A program made the translations under genes and the position numbers. The notes beneath the pieces are model-generated. The model saw only the letters and a list, made by a program, of their open reading frames with translations. It was not told the DNA's origin and ran no database searches. This document shows, piece after piece, positions 5,837 through 17,800 of a stretch of DNA of 64,000 bases. The stretch's first letter is position 1; each line of letters begins with the position of its first letter. Origin of the DNA: Lepidodermella squamata (taxonomy: Eukaryota; Animalia; Gastrotricha); assembly GCA_047495785.1 (NCBI GenBank), contig JBLDXI010000006.1, positions 1 to 64,000 of the forward strand, given 5' to 3'.

Positions 5837-8800
5837 TCACGTAGAGCCGTTGATACAATGCTCGCAGATGGCACCATTCAGCGGGCTCGAACACTGGACG
5901 TCGTCCCACTTTCCGTCGGACGCCATGCGCATGCACAGATAATCATTTGTACCTGTGCCACAGTACTGCATGAAGTCCGGGTTACTTGCTTCCCAATTTC
6001 CTTGCCAGCCGATCGGAAGTTCGATGTCCCAGTAATAGGTTCCATTGCTGGCGCCAAGACCGTTCATACCACCAATCCACATGCCGTTGCAACCCCAAGG
6101 TAGGCTGAGGTCTATTGAAATCGAAACGATTTCGAAGAAGTTTTATCAACTAGCAAACTTACTTGCGAACTTCGCAACCTCAGCTTGCACGTCTGGGCTC
6201 TGAATCCAAGACAGCCGAGAACTCAAGCCAGCACAAGCTGCTTCTGCTTCGTCTCGCTTCAGCCCGTTACGGTATAGTGGAGCAAATCTGGATGAAGACT
6301 CGCAGTCGCCGATATATACCCCTTTTTACAGATTAAGATTTAATGACAAGTTAAAACAGAGCGTAATAAACTTACACGTCTCGCATGTTGCTTTATCAGA
6401 GAATGTGAATCCGTAATCAGGCTGGTGATGCAAACTTTCAATTTTGTTCAAAATGCATAAACCTCGAAAATTACCGCATCATCAGGGCACAAGATGTCAT
6501 GCGGCATGCAAACTAAAGGCTCTTTATCTTTGACGCAGAGTTTGTGAGGACCCTAAGAAAATAATGAAGTCGACGTTTTTCCAGCTTTTACATCTTAAAT
6601 ATCACTGACATCAGCATTCCAGGCAGCTTCGCAATCCTGAATGTTGAGTCCGAGTGATTCCTTGCTATCGAAATACGCAAGCTAAAGAAAAGCGAGGGAT
6701 AATTCATAAGAGAAGGTATTTATCCATTGATTTACGGCCACACTTTCAGGGCATCCTGTGCTGCTGGCTACGCAAGTGTGAGTGCCCGATTCGAAACAGA
6801 GAACAGCTGTTTTCTCAGGGCAAGTCTTCTCGCAGATAGCCCCGTCCAGGGTCGAGCCGCAGTTGACATCGTCCCATGTGCCGGTTGAGCTCACACGAGC
6901 GCACAGACCCGGACCGGGACCGCAGACAGCCATGAAGTCAGGCTGGCCTGGAGCCCAGTTCGAAAATCCGAACTGGCGATACTTATCGTTACCCCAGATG
7001 AAGGTTTTTCCAAGCGCGTCCGAGCCATTCTTTCCTCCGATCCACAAGCCGTTGCAGCCCCACGGTTTCTTAAGGTCTGAGATTGAATTAACAGAAATTA
7101 AAAGAATTAGCCATAATAACTCACCAGCTATTTGGCGGATTGCAGTTTGCTCTATTCCAGAATCGATTTGAGCGAGACGAGTTCCGAGAGAAGAACACAC
7201 ATCGTTAGCTGCATCCCAGGTTAAACTGCTGTAGATGGGCGCGAATTTGGTGTAAGACGGGCAATCGAGACCCATCCCTGTGAAAAAATTGCCGCGGTAA
7301 ATATATTATTAGTTTCAGAAATAACTAACATCCCGCACAGGTGTCGAAATTAGGGAATCGGGACCCGGTATCCACCTGTTATCAAGTCAATAAAAATAGG
7401 ACGAAGCTGGTGGTTAAGAAAACTTGCACTGTCTTTAGGGCATGGAATATCGATGTACAGGCAATAAGTGGGAACACTTCCAACCCTGCAAAGCCTGAAA
7501 GGTAGCTATAGAGGGAAGTTACACTTATTAGGGCCCGACAGATTTTGTGCGGGGCTCACATCTGAATTCATTGCATCGCCGCAATCAACAGCATTCCCAT
7601 ACGCAGTGTCTCTTGCGTCGAAGGATTTCGCCTTGAATTGCGAGGATATAAATTTACGAAGTTTATTCTTTGGTTTTAGTACTTACCAAAAACTTTCCTC
7701 CCGAACATTCCCCTTGTAACTGGCATTCGACCGTACCATGACCGATACAAAGCTTGTAAGTGAGCTCTGGGCAAGTCTTCTCGCAAAGAGCGCCGTTTAG
7801 GACTACGCTGTTGCAATCTACGTCATCCCAAGTGCCGGTCGAGGTCATGCGCAGGCAGTAACCCGGCCCTGGACCACAGCCTGAGAAATCCGGCTCGCTT
7901 TGTTCCCAGTTGGAGTACGAGATCGCGCGACCTTGCGTATCGCCCCACACGAAGGTTGTATTATACGAATCCTCCCCGTTGCGTCCCCCGAACCAGAAGC
8001 CGTTGCAGCCGTGCGTTAGACTCAGGTCTTAATTTGAAACAAACCACGGGTTAAAATTATGGCGAAATCAAGCTTTAGGTTATGCGAAAACATTTCCGTA
8101 TGCCATTTTGAAAGCTGGCAACCTGTGGCCTTAAAGCTTCAAAAGTGAAAACGATGATTTTTCAAAAAATCGAAGAGAAAGTCGAATTAAAAGCCCGCCC
8201 TGAGTCGAAATACCGTAACGGGTCCTAACTTTGGAAAAAAACACCTTTTTTAATTTAAAAAAAATTCGGTTTTCGTCTAAAAAATGGAAAAAATAGCAAA
8301 ACCTCCACCCAAGGAATCTGCGTGGACAGGTGAAGTTTGGAAAATTTAGAAGCTCACCTTGATTTAAAAAAAAATAGGTAAAGAAACCTCTAAATTTGGA
8401 CACTCGTTCCCGAATTTGGACACCTCATTTGCATGTGCTAATTCGACCTTACACACATTTTATTCCTTGTTGCGCAATTTTTCTCGTGTTTTTAAAGACG
8501 ACTTTTGTAGCCACTTGACACTAAAATATTGCTACCGATAGCATTCACTCATCGTCAGATTTAATGCTGATGTACGCAAAACCAATTATACACCAGGCTT
8601 TTAATACCGTTAATGAACGATGAATCTTCTCAAAACTATGATAAACCAGGTGAAAATGTCTCAGAAGCACCGAGTCTCACTTAGAAAGTAGACGGAGGGA
8701 CTCATTCAAACCTCAACCCATGGTTTAACCTCAAACTCAGTTTCTTTATCGCCGAACTAGTGATATTATTTACCGAAAGTGAACTGTCATTTGTCCCATG

Positions 8801-11800
8801 GTACCTGCTGTTCACCTGTTTGATTGGGCGCCCTCGGATTTGTATTCGGATTCATTATTATTCTCTATGCTCTCTAGCCAAAATCATGAAAGCATAGCCT
8901 AGGCCGGGAGTCATTAAGCTAATTCCAAGGTTCCATCAATGCGTTGCCATTCTTTTCAAAAACTGACAAAAAGCATACATTTCGTTTGCATATGCATAGA
9001 GATAAAAATATCATTAAAAGTGTCCAAATTTAGAGGCTAAATTTAAAGTCACCTGTATCCAAATTGGCTTGTCCTTCTGCCGAGATTTTTTCACAGAATT
9101 TAGTTTAGGTAAATCCCTATGCGCTAAGTAAATTTCAGCCCTAACCGTTCACAGGTGAGCATTTGGCAAGGGGGGTCCCAAAACACCCTTCTGAGTGATC
9201 GACCTTTGGCGATTTTTCGCAAATCGATCGTACATGAAAGTATTGGCAAATTTGGTACCGTTGGAAAGCCAATGAAGGGAGCTATTTTTCAGTGAAATTT
9301 TGAAATTTTTATCAGCTATGCACAAATTGATATTTGGGTCTAAAGCTCAAAGCGTCAAAATTTGGGGTGTCCAAATTTAGGGCGCCTTACGGTATTGAAG
9401 AAATTTTGCGGTGACGAAGTCTTCCCCAATAATCTGGCGGTTTTAAAACCGTGACTTCGAGTTTCAAAAATCCTAAATTCAAACCAAAGTCGGGCGAGGT
9501 GATTCTTTGATTTCAAGCAAATTTGCAGAATTTTTCTATATTTTTGAACTTTGATCAATTTTCTAAGATAAAATCTTTGAATAAATAAGCTGAGTTTTAA
9601 ATTAATTAACAATAAGCGGACGATTTTTCAGCTCACATTTACCAGATTTCTAACCTAATTTTCATCTAATTTCATAGTTTTCTTCCTAATCATAGACAAC
9701 ACTGTAACGCTGTCTATGTTCCTAATATTGCCTGGCTTTCAATTTTCTTGGAAAAGACTACAATTTGTAGAATACCAATTACCAATGCTGATTTTTATAA
9801 TGATAATGATTTTAATAATGATTTTAAAAATAAAAAAATGCCATAATTACTGGAAAATTTAAGGGAAATATTGGCGATCCCGAAATGATATCCGAAGTCT
9901 GCCAGAATCTTTTTCAAACAAAATTGATCGAATCACACATGAGACCTGAAATGTTTCTCAAACGAAATCTGATGAGACGGATAATTTTATAGACACTCTT
10001 CTAAATTTTACCCCTGAAAGGTTAATCCTCCCAAAGCTCGAATTACCTTTTCTCTCCGCTATAGCCCCACACTGAATAAAAGTCAAACAAATTCAAACAA
10101 ATTCTCCATCAGTCGAAGTTGAAGCTCTCGCGTGGATTAAAATCAGCTAATTTAAAGAAAACGCTAATTTCGAATTCTTCAAATTTTCTCCGCTATAAAA
10201 GTCGCAAGTCGAAATTTTCCCTTTGTAATCGTCCCTAGTGATTAATACCATGGTTAATCTGCGAAGTTCTGCTAAGATCTCTAAGATTCAAGATCTTCAT
10301 AAATCTTTGCAAGATCTTGGAAAGACTTTCGAATGATTTCTTACCAAAGATCTTGAGTGATCTTTGCAAGAACTTGGAAAGACTTGTTATGATTGCTTTG
10401 TACGGATCTTGGCTGAACTTGGCTGGAGGTCATTAAACACATTCACTTTGCAATCAAAGGCTGATGCGATATACTATTTTCACTTACTGAGAGGCGAGAA
10501 TGAATAATGCCTGCGATGAAAAAACACCCGAACTAGCATTCGTATTCTACGCCGACAATGAAAAAATGAGGTCTCATGAAAATAATAACAAACTACGGCC
10601 AACATTATTTGTAATCAATGGAAAAATATAAAATAAATGACAATATGTGTTAGACATATTTTCTAATAAAGAAAATGTATTTTATTTACCGACAAGATAT
10701 TTTGAACCACCCGGTAAATTTGAATGTTTGACGTCTCCTAGCTAACGGAGCTGAGAATCTCTTTTTCAATAGCACTTTGTAAAGTCTCCGACCTCTGACC
10801 TAATTTAAGGACAAATTTTTCTTATTTTGCATCTGATATTACCAGGATAATGGTCGACTTCTAATTATAGGACATATTAATAAGCTATACTTCCATGCAT
10901 TCCGGTAGGAGTCGGAAGGAGGATGACGACTGCTACTCAAGGTCTCGAAAACGAAGAGCTCCGATTCCTTTAAGTCTTGCTGAGGATGTTAGTGATGACA
11001 TTGCTTCCGAACCACCCTACCCTGACGTCGTTGCAGATAGCAACTCTAGTCCTGATATTAATGGTCATCTTGAAAACATTTTGCCGGAGAATGCTTGTAA
11101 TTTTTATTATTTTATCTATTTGAATCTATCATGTTATGTCTCGGCTTAGCACTTGACAACCTTAGCCTCGTTGAAGATGATGAAAATTATGCAGCTAGCG
11201 AAGAAAGCTTTCAGGAAAATCCTGACTTGGGTTAGTAGAATATATTTAATTCTGAATACTCCTTACATATAACCTCTACATTAGATATCCCTGGGCAGGT
11301 GGTAACCTTTGATCTAGACCAGTTTTTACTGGAAAGTGGCATGGAGGAGGTCTTGAAGGAGCAGACAACTAAAGGAAAAATTCTGCATTCATACATCGAA
11401 TCTGGGGGTGTGTGTAACCGGTTCATGTTGAAGCTGCGGTCACATCTCGCTGAAGTTGGGCTATCAACATACGATTGTGCTTCTGTCGCAAGAAAAATGG
11501 GCAGAACCTTAATTCGATGCTGCAAATTATATTGCATTCAATGCAGCTCCTTGGTTGAGCAAAAATTTTGTCCTAATATTGAATGCGTGCATAATGGTCC
11601 GCAATATTCATCGGATCGTTTCAAGCTGAGCGTGCTACATCCCCTACTTCTGCCTCAACTTGGAATAATAGTTAGAAGTTTTCCTGATCTGGCGAGCCAA
11701 GATCTGCTGATCGACGTTAGCACTGACGGCGCTCCGCTCGTTAATCACGGCCGCCTTTCTATATGGCCTGTTCTTGGCAGTATCAGCAATCTTGACCTCA

Positions 11801-14800
11801 ATTTGCGCTTCAAAAGGCGAAACGTGTTGCTTCTTGGCCTCTGGTGCGGGGACAGAAAACCGCAAAATGAAGATGAATGGGGTTATTTGCTTGACCCAAT
11901 TTTCGATATCATTGGTCAGCATGAAATGGTCATTGGGGGTAAACAATTTGGCTTTAACCTGGATATCAGGTTGTTAGTTGGGGATCTACCCGCTTTAGCT
12001 GCAGTTCTCAATGTTCAGCAGTTCAATGGCGAATTTGGCTGCATGTTTTGTTATCAGCCTGCTGTTAAATTGAAAGAACCCGATTTAGTTCGTTCAATGG
12101 TTAGACCATATCTCGTGAAATTGGCAAAACCTAGGACTGTTGCTAGCTTCATGGAAGATCGACTTTTGTTCCGTCTCGGATCCAAAGGAAATTCACGCTT
12201 CGACAATCGTATCAGCATGCCCTACCAAATCGCAATCGATTACATGCATCAGTCTGTTGAGGTAAATTTAATGATAAATCTTTTATCTCAAGAATTTAAA
12301 GGTCTCTGATGAGTCTCTTGGCCGAGACGAAACGTATATGTATACGTCAGACTAGCCATAATTTCTAATGTAACTTTTTTGTTGTGATAAATTTTGTATT
12401 CAAATTATGTATAAAAAGGTCTCTGATGAGTCTCTTGGCCGAGACGAAACGTATACGTCACGTGTACGTCAGACTTGCCATTATATTTGAAACAATTAAT
12501 TTATTGATTAAATTTCATTTATTTCAGGGATACCCCGAACATTGAGATACGAATATTTTACAGCTGTCATTATTTTAGGGAGTCCTCAAATGGCTTTCTG
12601 TCTGCTGGCTCCCTCCTCACGCGAAAATTGGATCGGAAGATCGGGAACTGCTTAAAAATGAGCTGGCGCTAATTCAATATCCTTGCAGCATGATCTCGCT
12701 GAGACTGCCTGATTTCAAATATCTGAGCTCAGAATTCAAAGCGAAGCACTTGAAGCTATTCACCCTTGATTTTGGGCCGATACTATTATTTGACAAGCTT
12801 TCTCAGGCTTTGTACATCCACTATGTCACCTATGTTTTGGGAATTAGAATCGCCAAGACGTCTATTATGCCAGCTACGTCGGAAGAACGCCGCCCATTTG
12901 CCGATTTGTGCTTCAAACTAATGCGAACCTTCCAGAAAGAAGTTGCCACGCTTTATGACAGGTCATTTGAGACCCACAACGTCCATCTCGCTCATCATTT
13001 AGCTGATAAAGTGGAATCTCACGGTCGCCTTAGTGACTACTCTGCTTTTGGCTTCGAGGGATTTATCGCCAATATTAAGAGCAGCTTCGAAGGAACTCGG
13101 TTTCATACTGAGCAAATTTCGCGATTTGTTCTGCTCAAAATGTACCTGGAACATTCTGCTGTTGAAGATGAAGCTCATGCCAGATTTGTACAGGTACCGC
13201 TACATAAAGTGACAAAGGAAATAGTGTCATTGTTTCCGTCAACTCGCGCTAAATTCTTTGCCAAAGTTCCCTTTGGTCACAGTTTCCTCACTGCCCCTAT
13301 TCGGCTAGCTGGAGCTGAACCTGCTTTGCCAAGGTCTTATGCAGTGCGGACACTGAAAGGGCGGATCTTCGAGGGGGGCGAAACTTGCGATTACCAACGG
13401 AGATGTTTTATATTGTTATGATTATTACCGTATTTTATCGAAATAATAACACCCTAGAATAATAGCCTAAAGGTCCTAAGGTTAATAATAGCAGTCTCGA
13501 CTAATAGTCACGTGATTCAAAAGCAAGTTGAAGCCTGGAAAAGCATCTCGTAGCTCTTATAATCTTATATGGGTGTGATTATTTATACTCAAAGAAAAGC
13601 CCCCTTCAATAATTGCCCGATTTTTTTCACTACTTATCAAGTTCGTACAAAATTAATCAGCATGGCTATTATTCGATAAAATACGGTAGTATTATTCTAT
13701 TTCTATTATCTAATTTTTCAGATTCCAAGTTTTTCGCCGCCTTCGAGAACGCCGCCTCACACTGATTATTAGCAATAATTTTATGATCTGCTAAAACTGC
13801 TTTCTAATTATCTGCTTTTCCGACCATATGGCACGGCAAAATTTCAGTAGATGAAGTTCAAATTAAAAACTGAAATTTTTGCGATTCACTTTTTTATTTG
13901 ATGGAGTGAAAGGCGCCGTGAAAAACAATTAATTGAATACACATCGGATCAAGCAAATCGAAAACAGGAAAGCAGAAATTATAACACATGAGAAACGTTT
14001 ATTTGCGAAATAGGCGGATTGCTGCCTTGGGTTTTGGAATTTTGCCCATTTTAGATAGGTACAGACGCCAAAACGTGCGCCGCTCTTGCACAGCAAAGGC
14101 GCTATTGACGTCACCGGGAGCCAGGCGGTAGCGATTAAGGAAGAGGAAGCGCGGTTCAGTGTCATAAAGCTCGGCTATTTCGCCGTCAGTTTTAGGCGTG
14201 GCCGGATGAATTCGTTCATGCGCCTCCTGAAACAGTAAAAACAATTATTTGTTAGTACAATAAAAATTAAATTAAGAAGAATTGATAAAAATTAATAGCT
14301 AACCTCTTTTTTCATCTTATCAGGTGTCCGCTGTCTGTCCGGGACGATTCTCGGCCTCCGGGGCGTTTTAGAGTTGCGAGCGGGCGGCGGCTTATTCTTG
14401 CGTTCCATTATGTCGCACTTTCGCCGTGGCGCAGCTGGTGTAAGCGCGCAGTGCGGCGCTGTTGATGATGATGATGATGAAGCGGCGTTCTTCATTTTAT
14501 ATAACTTGTAACCTTAATTTTTACTACAAAAATAAATAACCCAACATTCAAATATTAGCAATAATTTCATTAAACGCAACGCACGTGTCGAAATAATAAT
14601 AAGAGCGGCGTTAACGGCGCGTTATAACCAGGCGCGTTATAACTGGGCGCGTTATAATAACTGGGCGCGTTATAATAACTGGGCGCGTTATAACGAGAAC
14701 TGCATTCTCGGCAGGCAACAAAATGTTAAAATAGATTATCGATGAGCAGAAATTCGTTCGCCGTATATAAAGCATAGTATAGCCTAATAATTACTCATAA

Positions 14801-17800
14801 TTATTGACAGCGGGACGCGGAAAATCATATATAGAATATTTCAAAATTTATGGCAGTTTTATTATAATCTATTATTATTGCTATATTCTAAATAAAACTA
14901 TTTTAATATATTATTGCTATGAAAGTTTTATAGCAATAATAATAGCCTGCCTTCATAATAATAAAATAGCGATAAATAATAGCGCCTCGCAACTCACAAT
15001 ATCGTAAGATAAGGCTCCATTGTGTGTCCGCATCGAGCGAATTATTACGAAGATGAGCAGTAGACGATGACGAGCGCGCGCTCAGAAAGTGACATGTGCG
15101 CGCTAGTACGCATATAGTATAATATCATACTTACACTACACTACACTACACTACACTACACTACACTATACGACTTGTCGACTTGTTTAAACTTATCAAA
15201 ACATGTGGTTTGGCCTTAACAGGGTGGATTTTCATCACGATTTTCTACATTGCTATTAATTTGTCGTTGAATTTTCTCGATAGGTCGTTTTCTGTTTATT
15301 TATTTATCATCAGGTGCGCATCTATTATCGCGCCTCCATTTGCGTGCGCCGGTTAGACTTGCGTGCAACCACAGGCGGTTGCTTGATCGTGTGTTTATCT
15401 TGTGGTAGCCGTTCCCGTCAACCAAAACAACTCGACTGCAACCTAAAAGGCGTTGCCGCGTGACAGCCGGCTATCTTGCCGTGTCATCGTAGCCCTTGTG
15501 GAAACCTGAGGGACAGCAGCTCATCGCCAATCGTGATTGGCCAGAAATATGTTTATAAACACGCTCGTCGCAGGTAAATTCATCATTAGCTCTAAATTTA
15601 GTACTGAATATCACCATGTTCATTCTAGTTTCGTGGGTTAGCGACCGCAGCTTTAGCATCTACAATGCCGAAGCGTCCGAGTTGGAAAAAGTTGACGCCG
15701 CCGACATTGCGGTCAACCGTCGCATCAGCATCTGCTACGACGACAACGGCGAATGCGAAGCCGACGTGCTGCTCGTCGCCAATACTGAAGCAGAGTGCGT
15801 AGCCACTCGAAAAGCACTGATCGCTATACGCCGCTTCGACAAGCCGCGCCAATCGCCTCGAGCCTCACCTCAAGCTTCACCTCAAGCCTCGCCTCGCCGC
15901 GCCAGTACCAAGCGATCGCACACCTCTCCGCCCAAGCACTGTGCTTTTGGCCCTGGTTACACTGCCGAAGATGATGATGAAGTAACCGTCATTCGCAAGA
16001 AAGCGCCTTCTGAATTCATCCGACCTGAACCGCCTTTCGCTCCGCCGACGAAATCGTCTAAAACTGCCGCCATTTGTTTGTCGTCGTCACAGCCGCCGAA
16101 TACACCCGCATCTCATCGCCCGCCGCCGAATACGCCCGCTTCTCATCGTCCGGCACCGTCGCATTCTCAACCTGGTGCAACACCGCGAATTAAGTCTCTG
16201 TCAACCGGCGGCGCTGCTGTCTACCCGCAGGCGCCGACAACTGACAAGTCGTCAATCGTTGAGACTACGCCACAGCAATCAATCGACAATATCACGCCGC
16301 AAACTGCTGCTTCTGAAGGTTCAATGGCAAAGCAATTAAAACAGGTGGGTGTTTTTATTTTAATTTAATTTTAATTTTGCGAATATTTTTTTGATTTTAA
16401 TTTGTTCCGTGACTAAATAATTTTCTAATTTTCATTTATTTAGATCCTTCAAGCAGTCGCCCTGCTGACGAAGAAGCAAGAACTCACCGCAGCCGGCCCG
16501 AGTCAGCCTGCCGTTTGGGATGGCTTCGACTACGCCAACTGCCGCGCTCGTTCTCGCGGCCCGAACAAATGGGCTATCTTCACGTTTCGCGGTCTATTCG
16601 GCGATACAAGGCTGTCAAACAGTATCATCGAGCCGGTCTCTGCCGAAAAGTCGAAACGAACGCCTATCGACGATTCCAATGCTCACGAAGAGCTCGAATT
16701 CTTTAGAAGTAAGTTTTCGTGTTTTTTATCCGCTGATTTTTTAATAAATGCTTCTTTTTGAACAGTTACTTTTCGAGCGCTCTTTGGCGATGACGTGATG
16801 CGCTTCGATCGCGCCCGTGCTGCTGTCAATCAGTGGGGCAACGATGAACACCGCCGCCGTCGCCTTCGCGCGGCTCGCATTGCTACTGCCGCCGCCGACC
16901 GAACTTCGGCCCGCGCCGACGGTGCCGATCCAGCTGAGAGTTCACTGGAGGATGGCGGAGATAGCGTCATTGAGACTGCTATTCGTTATTTAGAAGAAAA
17001 CCCATGAACTATTATTATTATTATTTCGTTGTTTTTATTGTTATCATCATCGTCATCATCTTCATTATTTCTGTGTGCGTGTGCGCTGGTTGCGCGTGTG
17101 TTTGCGCGGTTTTTATCAGAAAATGTTTGCGTTTTATATTGATTTCGAGACAATCACTGGAATTAGGTGTGATAATATTAAGGTCGTGCTTGGCGTGTTT
17201 TTTATACCGAAAAACGATTTTCTTCGGTAATAAAGTTGGCAACTCTGAAATTCTAGTCGTGTTTTATACCTGGGTGCGTACTTTCGGGTGCGGTTCCGTG
17301 GGCGCCAGTAAAAATTTCGAGCCAAGATTTGGAAAGATGAGAACAAGAATTATTTAAAAACATGAAAGATTGTAGAAATCTGAGCAGTTCTTAGTGTCAC
17401 CTTTGAATGATCTTTCAATAACACCAAAGATCTTCATTAATTTTCTGCTAAGATCTTTGGACCGAAATCTTTGCAAATCTGTGCAAGATCGTGCACGGAT
17501 CTTTGATGGATCTTGGCAAGTTCAGCTAAGATCTTGCCAAGATTTGATCCCTAGGGGTGGTTTTAAATTAAAAAAAAACCCACTCGCCAGAGGAGCGATG
17601 GCTGATTGCTCCGTGGCACTGTCGACTTGAGCGAGACGAGTGTTCAGCGACGCACACGCCTGCCCGGCTTCGGACCATGTTTTGCCAAAGTAGAGCGGGG
17701 CGAATTTTCTATCCGCCGAACAGCCCAAGTTTGTCCCTATTGTAAAGAAAAACAATAAAAAAAAGCAGGTTAATTCAAATTTAAGCTCACATGGTGCACA

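Follow-up and report, generated by a model that had tools for sequence, protein, structure and literature searches.

The stretch of DNA analysed here is a window of 64,000 nucleotides (nt) from the gastrotrich Lepidodermella squamata (GenBank assembly GCA_047495785.1, contig JBLDXI010000006.1, positions 1 to 64,000 of the forward strand). It contains a cut-and-paste DNA transposon of ~7.3 kb (10233-17556, plus strand), and within the intron of the transposase gene of this transposon there are two hammerhead ribozymes, arranged in tandem. The limits of the transposon were set by a second copy elsewhere in the genome, by imperfect 11-bp inverted ends of the form CCCTAG(T/G)GAT(T/C) (10233-10243 and 17546-17556) and by a 2-bp target duplication, GT, at 10231-10232 and 17557-17558; inside these limits there are AAGATCT-type subterminal repeats. 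The transposase exon upstream of the intron is an open frame at 11299-12261 (plus strand), which ends in ...DYMHQSVE in phase 0. The exon downstream, at 12579-13421 (plus strand), is an open frame that begins GVLKWLSVCWLPP and is homologous to the second open reading frame (ORF) of a sister family of transposons. Between the two exons lies an intron of 317 nt (12262-12578, plus strand; GTAAAT...TTTTAG), which contains both hammerheads.

Direct reading of the plus strand shows two complete type I hammerheads, at 12301-12358 (hammerhead 1, HHR1) and 12417-12480 (hammerhead 2, HHR2), and folding and pattern matching identified the same two motifs. In HHR1, helix I (12301-12305 with 12349-12353; GGUCU/AGACU, 5 bp) encloses, in order, the core CUGAUGA (12306-12312), helix II (12313-12317 with 12324-12328; GUCUC/GAGAC) with its loop UUGGCC (12318-12323), the GAAA (12329-12332), helix III with 5 bp and a tetraloop (12333-12346), and the dinucleotide U-C (12347-12348), with cleavage predicted between 12348 and 12349; a tail GCCA follows at 12355-12358. 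In HHR2, helix I has 6 bp (12417-12422 with 12471-12476), the core CUGAUGA is at 12423-12429, helix II and its loop are the same as in HHR1 (12430-12445), the GAAA is at 12446-12449, helix III has 8 bp and a 3-nt loop (12450-12468), the U-C is at 12469-12470, with cleavage predicted between 12470 and 12471, and the tail GCCA is at 12477-12480. The spacing between HHR1 and HHR2 is 117 nt, and the AT-rich spacer between them (12359-12416, plus strand) has only one other copy in the genome, in the second copy of the transposon. Thus, direct reading together with intron homology (see below) bears out what a first-pass annotation of this DNA had claimed, i.e., two complete type I hammerheads in tandem, 117 nt apart, on the sense strand of an intron; the coordinates of the two predicted cuts likewise give the 122-nt fragment that it had placed between them.

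Both copies have the features that define the type I core, namely CUGANGA, GAAA, and a U-H cleavage dinucleotide with an A15.1-U16.1 pair, and the hammerhead core pattern has two matches in the window, where 0.02 would be expected. When folded singly, both HHR1 and HHR2 form the three-way junction, with helices II and III as described above. The long helix III of HHR2 is an 11-nt microduplication, detected by Tandem Repeats Finder (TRF) as a period of 11 in 2.1 copies at 12449-12471. The first-pass annotation had named a search with Infernal and the Rfam hammerhead models as a check, and this check did not come out in its favour: there was no match at gathering score anywhere in the window, and the sub-threshold scores were 21.7 bits for RF00163 (gathering score 34), 24.6 bits for RF00008 (gathering score 48.5) and 30.5 bits for RF03152. 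A long helix III and a short helix I are penalised by the models. A search of the whole genome with RF00163 returned noise only, and control genomes gave matches too.

The absence of an Rfam match at gathering score could be taken to mean that the two motifs are chance look-alikes or dead motifs, which match the consensus and do not cleave; nearest-neighbour folding favours a shifted register of helix I, and minimal hammerheads of the Penelope type cleave poorly in vitro (PMC4209133). Such an explanation is very improbable, given that all the conserved core positions are present, that helix III is stable in both HHR1 and HHR2, that a reversed control pattern found nothing in the genome, and that helices I and III have undergone compensatory changes across families. 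The last point comes from a fold alignment of ten representatives drawn from three hammerhead families, in which helices I and III show compensatory double changes (8 pairs altered on both sides, with none of 500 shuffles as good) and 95.9% of the cells are paired, compared with 25-40% in slid controls. Outside the gastrotrich genome, the exact 28-nt core was found in 43 metagenome contigs. All but one of these belong to a single family (~40% GC), which has a different helix I (GUAU/AUAC) and a different helix III; the exception, a contig of 63% GC, differs again in helix I, and its helix III has 6 bp.

The same comparison bears on the tail. In all three families, whose helices I and III differ, GCCA starts 7 nt after the cut; the search pattern prescribed loop II but did not include the GCCA tail. 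The first-pass annotation had suggested that GCCA pairs with the UGGC of loop II to form a pseudoknot, and this idea gains support from the position of the tail having been kept across families. Covariation, on the other hand, does not add to it, as the four proposed pairs are invariant in the ten-sequence alignment. Pseudoknots between the loop of one helix and a tail that lies past the other are known from other hammerheads, including a human intronic type I hammerhead (PMC3088659), and have been predicted for ~40% of hammerheads (Perreault et al. 2011, PMC3088659). The motifs in the window resemble the hammerheads stabilised in this way in that 4 bp are possible between the UGGC of loop II and the GCCA after helix I, and differ from them in that the partners do not vary, so that the support lies in the position of GCCA. 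With its conserved tail, this class of minimal hammerheads gains a candidate pseudoknot that can be tested.

The second copy of the transposon, at C54:591125-598687, is 96-100% identical to the copy in the window, has unrelated flanks and contains the same pair of ribozymes in its intron, as an alignment of the transposon copies, a further check named by the first-pass annotation, confirmed. Both copies are bordered by target duplications of 2 bp, but the duplicated bases differ: GT in the window and CA at C54. Since these are two transposed copies with different duplications, and both have the ribozyme pair, the pair has moved with the transposon at least once. Identity between the two copies varies along their length: it is ~99.7-100% in the first 3.1 kb, where the intron lies, and 96-97% in the remainder, which hints at gene conversion or a chimeric history.

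The transposase exons were searched and compared one by one. A search for homologous proteins with the exon gave no matches, which is probably due to a length filter. The exon at 11299-12261 matched DUF1258 with 23.8 bits, which is below the threshold of 33.1, and matched no other domain; the transposase of the sister family matched Transposase_21 with 25.1 bits (threshold 28.6); a remote homologue (P0003) passed the threshold for Transposase_21 with 37.8 bits, and P0003 and several other homologues passed that for DUF1258. On account of these domain matches in the sister family, the window exon and the remote homologues, the tnp2/CMC superfamily is a fair assignment for the transposase at the level of sequence. 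The first-pass annotation had called it a CACTA transposase. The superfamily implied by that name agrees with the domain matches of the homologues, but CACTA proper does not fit, with ends of CCCTAG(T/G)GAT and duplications of 2 bp, as opposed to CACTA ends and a duplication of 3 bp. Duplications of 2 bp are in keeping with the Mirage branch of the CMC superfamily, and the transposon in the window is presumably Mirage-like.

The sister family (L038) is represented by four copies, and its transposase is 39% identical to that in the window. It has an intron at the same codon (HQSIE/GV..WLPP), which is only 51 nt long and free of hammerheads. This implies that the intron at 12262-12578 is real and old, and that the ribozyme-bearing DNA was added to it later. 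It also implies that a splicing switch based on the ribozymes was not the ancestral state.

The 121 Mb genome assembly was searched with a 28-nt stretch that extends from the core through helix II, with 3 mismatches or fewer being accepted. This pattern had 30 matches in the genome, and the reversed control had none. Four of the matches, with the helix II GUUUC/GAAAC, were rejected as hammerheads, as they are without a U-H cleavage dinucleotide and without helix I; their removal leaves 26 family loci. The rejected matches (C4:608593, 709808 and 784437, and C42:1639543; L068-L071) are a repeat in four copies, which has CUGAUGAG, the GUUUC/GAAAC hairpin and then GAAAC.

The similarity between the window and the other loci is confined to 60-73 nt around each ribozyme. 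At most of the ~20 scattered loci, a repeat of ~300 bp terminates in this module at its 3′ end; the repeat has a fixed 5′ end, at L014:1276, and the flanks of the copies diverge ~17 nt past the cut site. Helix III of the scattered copies is minimal and palindromic (CGUAUACG), which is typical of Penelope-type hammerheads, thought to act as dimers (PMC4209133). The core and the cut site are intact in 6 of the 20 scattered copies and have been lost in 14, as would be expected of neutral relics. Neither telomere repeats nor reverse transcriptase (RT) ORFs were found beside the scattered copies at the loci that were fetched; the neighbouring ORFs are host genes, among them an nAChR-like gene, TRPM, a fucosyltransferase and an NB-ARC gene.

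Taken together, the similarity that is limited to the module, the decay of the scattered copies, the ribozyme-free intron of the sister family, the unique spacer, and the presence of the pair in both transposon copies make a passenger origin the most likely one, as far as can be judged from sequence. We consider it probable that HHR1 and HHR2 are retroelement-derived passengers with little effect on the transposase. Both are copies of a module of ~60-70 nt (helix I, core, helix II and GCCA tail), which is the extreme 3′ end of a short (~300-bp), gene-less, scattered retroelement. One or two retro-copies, heavily truncated at the 5′ end, probably inserted into the originally short (~51-nt) intron of the tnp2/CMC transposon, after which the pair was moved by cut-and-paste transposition, a step that is visible in the two transposed copies. 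In each motif, helix III has become longer through small duplications of its palindromic sequence. Retroelement-derived hammerheads in introns are common in other animals, and 44% of the retrozyme copies in Xenopus are intronic (10.64898/2026.07.22.740005).

Given the longer helix III, HHR1 and HHR2 would each be expected to fold and cleave on their own; the parental, minimal form would be expected to need a dimer (as may be deduced from PMC4209133). If the transposase pre-mRNA were cut, the 5′ splice site would end up on a different fragment from the branch point and the 3′ splice site. The distance from the second predicted cut to the 3′ splice site is 108 nt and the intron is short, so splicing may well be ahead most of the time. 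The net effect would most likely be neutral, or a mild damping of transposase output, with no dedicated switch.

Two type I hammerheads on the same strand, 117 nt apart, are also what a retrozyme would look like, since animal retrozymes are defined by tandem type I hammerheads (PMC7229834). According to this alternative, the 117/122-nt unit is a very small retrozyme of the type without long terminal repeats (non-LTR), which is copied into RNA as part of the transposase pre-mRNA, released by cleavage at both sites and circularised, with the DNA transposon as its vehicle. The pair does share with metazoan non-LTR retrozymes the same-strand tandem of type I hammerheads in AT-rich DNA, a predicted unit-length RNA and an intronic location, which is common among their copies (PMC7229834; 10.64898/2026.07.22.740005); moreover, the identical core is found in a family from metagenomic contigs of a eukaryote, and this family does occur as a 214-nt tandem dimer (L101). 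The flanks of HHR1 and HHR2 have a weak AT-rich motif in common, with a third occurrence downstream, but this similarity is near chance (p ~ 0.04). The unit of 117-122 nt is below the described range of 150-450 bp (PMC7229834), it comprises only two ribozymes, its candidate tertiary contact is the pseudoknot between loop II and tail and not one between loop 1 and loop 2, and TRF reports no 117-nt period at the pair. Furthermore, the unit has not been amplified as a family: the 64-nt spacer and the 117/122-nt unit have no copies in the genome beyond those in the two transposon copies, a full 201-nt query matches the C54 twin only, the matches at other loci being confined to the ribozyme, and there is no other close tandem pair of this ribozyme in the genome. 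Comparison of the spacer and the intron flanks with all the fetched loci and with the window gave nothing but short AT-rich words, the best being an exact match of 15 nt to C50 (E = 0.009), which was taken as chance. As the spacer has no other genome copies, the 122-nt unit is not an amplifying mini-retrozyme, and this alternative is very unlikely to be correct. The first-pass annotation had spoken of a very small retrozyme hitch-hiking on a transposon: the pair does ride on the transposon, as both copies with their GT and CA duplications attest, but the absence of other copies of the unit and of a 117-nt period speaks against the very small retrozyme.

Two relics of this ribozyme, at C50:307972 and 310462 (L060, L061, L013, L018), share one dead core, CGGAUGAG. 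They are separated by 2490 bp, and the DNA downstream of one is identical to that downstream of the other, so that a relic seems to have been copied in a local duplication of 2.5 kb.

A further group of findings weighs against the view that the hammerheads are passengers. The same module is present, again in the sense strand, in the enlarged intron of an unrelated, P-element-like transposase, and two such cases in so small a target are unexpected under random insertion. This second case is at the C7 locus (L004; C7:4207040-4210104, minus strand), where the module, at L004:1478-1536, is situated between two long ORFs on the same strand: the upstream ORF matches the helix-turn-helix (HTH) and RNase H N-terminal domains of P-element transposases, and the downstream ORF matches the TNP-like GTP-binding insertion domain. 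The upstream exon ends in ...AIIHKK/GTAAGC, and the ribozyme is within a gap of ~520 nt. The gaps of sister P-like families are free of the module and have lengths of ~55-60 nt (C29, C46 and C25), 181 nt (C4) and ~300 nt (C66). A relative on C38 (L003; C38:248599-251667) is decayed and internally deleted and has kept the module, at ~L003:1500-1560. Between the C7 and C38 copies, 56 of the 59 positions of the ribozyme are identical, compared with 84 of 151 in the flanks (Fisher p = 4.5e-9), and the exon pieces are 74-84% identical; the three differences in the ribozyme affect loop III and the core position N7, which is free to vary. Among transposon-borne copies, 6 of 6 hammerheads are intact, against 6 of 20 among scattered copies (p = 0.004, or 0.02 if the C54 duplicates are left out). 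Finally, all transposon-borne copies have a longer helix III, and in the nearest-neighbour model they are ~2 kcal/mol nearer to the active fold.

Perhaps, then, DNA transposons have co-opted a hammerhead in the transposase intron, so that self-cleavage either competes with splicing and damps transposase production, or destroys unspliced transcripts that encode truncated, inhibitory proteins. This would accommodate the independent occurrence of the module in two superfamilies that are not related, tnp2/CMC and P-like, each time in the sense strand and in an intron that measures ~51-60 nt in sister families, as well as the conservation of the C7/C38 ribozyme above its flanks and exon pieces, the intactness of the transposon-borne copies and the lengthening of helix III in every one of them. 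A precedent exists in the intronic CPEB3 ribozyme, whose kinetic competition with splicing reduces the amounts of mRNA and protein (PMC10919898, also citing Fong et al. 2009). However, the known cases amount to two lineages with two copies apiece. One of these copies, that on C38, is internally deleted, contains stops and is dead, and selection on it is difficult to account for; moreover, the module is missing from C4, the nearest of the P-like relatives, and from the sister family of the CMC transposon. The copies in the window (C6) and at C54 are too young to show constraint, with 4 differences between their introns, none of which is in the ribozymes (P = 0.18). In addition, whereas fast intronic ribozymes lower the amount of spliced mRNA, slow ones can leave splicing unaffected (PMC10919898). 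We regard a maintained regulator as a possibility of rather low probability. The wider proposition is equally tentative: two unrelated transposon superfamilies would each have captured a retroelement hammerhead, sense-oriented within an intron of the transposase gene, and kept it active, as ribozyme control of transposase mRNA maturation that arose convergently from one common source. The built-in switch between self-cleavage and splicing put forward in the first-pass annotation does not stand, given a sister element without the insert and a module that is scattered through the genome apart from the transposon.

If a maintained function were true, this would be the first case found in which cut-and-paste transposons make use of a self-cleaving ribozyme within one of their introns, and the competition of ribozyme cleavage with splicing could be tested in a simple, naturally occurring system. 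If the hammerheads are passengers, as we favour, they are one more example of retroelement-derived hammerheads in an intron, and of a retroelement ribozyme that spreads further aboard a DNA transposon.

Among known systems, the minimal hammerheads of Penelope-like elements and Terminons (Cervera & de la Pena 2014, PMC4209133) are similar to those described here in being of type I with a short, open helix I (5 bp here), and the parental copies in this genome share with them a small palindromic helix III and the presence of many decaying copies at retroelement ends. The copies in the window differ in having a longer helix III (5 and 8 bp), in being expected to act as monomers and in being located inside a DNA transposon; they have no flanking repeat beside them, and no ORF for a telomerase-like RT (with or without GIY-YIG) was found in the intron or the transposon, or among the ORFs beside ten scattered copies. 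The human C10orf118 and RECK hammerheads (PMC3088659), of which that of C10orf118 is of type I and uses a pseudoknot (PMC3088659), and the HDV-like ribozyme of CPEB3 (PMC10919898) are also sense-strand ribozymes in spliceosomal introns. In those cases, however, one ribozyme occupies a long intron of a conserved host gene, whereas the pair in the window is in a 317-nt intron of a selfish element, where the 3′ splice site is only 108 nt away. Retroelement-derived type I hammerheads, their tandem arrangement and their intronic copies are already known (PMC4209133, PMC7229834, 10.64898/2026.07.22.740005), and a literature search found no report of hammerheads in introns of the transposase genes of DNA transposons. 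What is new here is the case of the P-like transposon, the conservation test on C7 and C38, the target duplications and the support for the fold across families.

Several additional observations concern the surroundings of these elements. Just upstream of the transposon in the window, at 8210-9396, there is an unclassified repeat of ~1.2 kb, with more than 25 copies in the genome at 85-95% identity. In both copies of the P-like transposon, ~55 nt downstream of the ribozyme (L004:1452-1475 and L003:1455-1478, minus strand), there is a conserved polypyrimidine-AG, followed by 9 nt and then GTAAG, an arrangement that resembles a 9-nt micro-exon or splice signals imported with the insert.

Other observations relate to the metagenome contigs. 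In those of L082-L124, most of which have names beginning with Ga0126343_, the identical 28-nt core and helix II occur, with the same GCCA tail, in a repeat family of another eukaryote. The tandem dimer of 214 nt in the ~40% GC family is at L101:1589-1858 and is retrozyme-like. The contig with 63% GC (Ga0272441_10001622, 47.7 kb) is GC-rich and probably prokaryotic or from a phage. Its hammerhead, at L088:5001-5066, has the same core and helix II and the tail AGCCA, together with a GC-rich helix I and the 6-bp helix III, and is predicted to be almost entirely in the active fold (P = 0.57).

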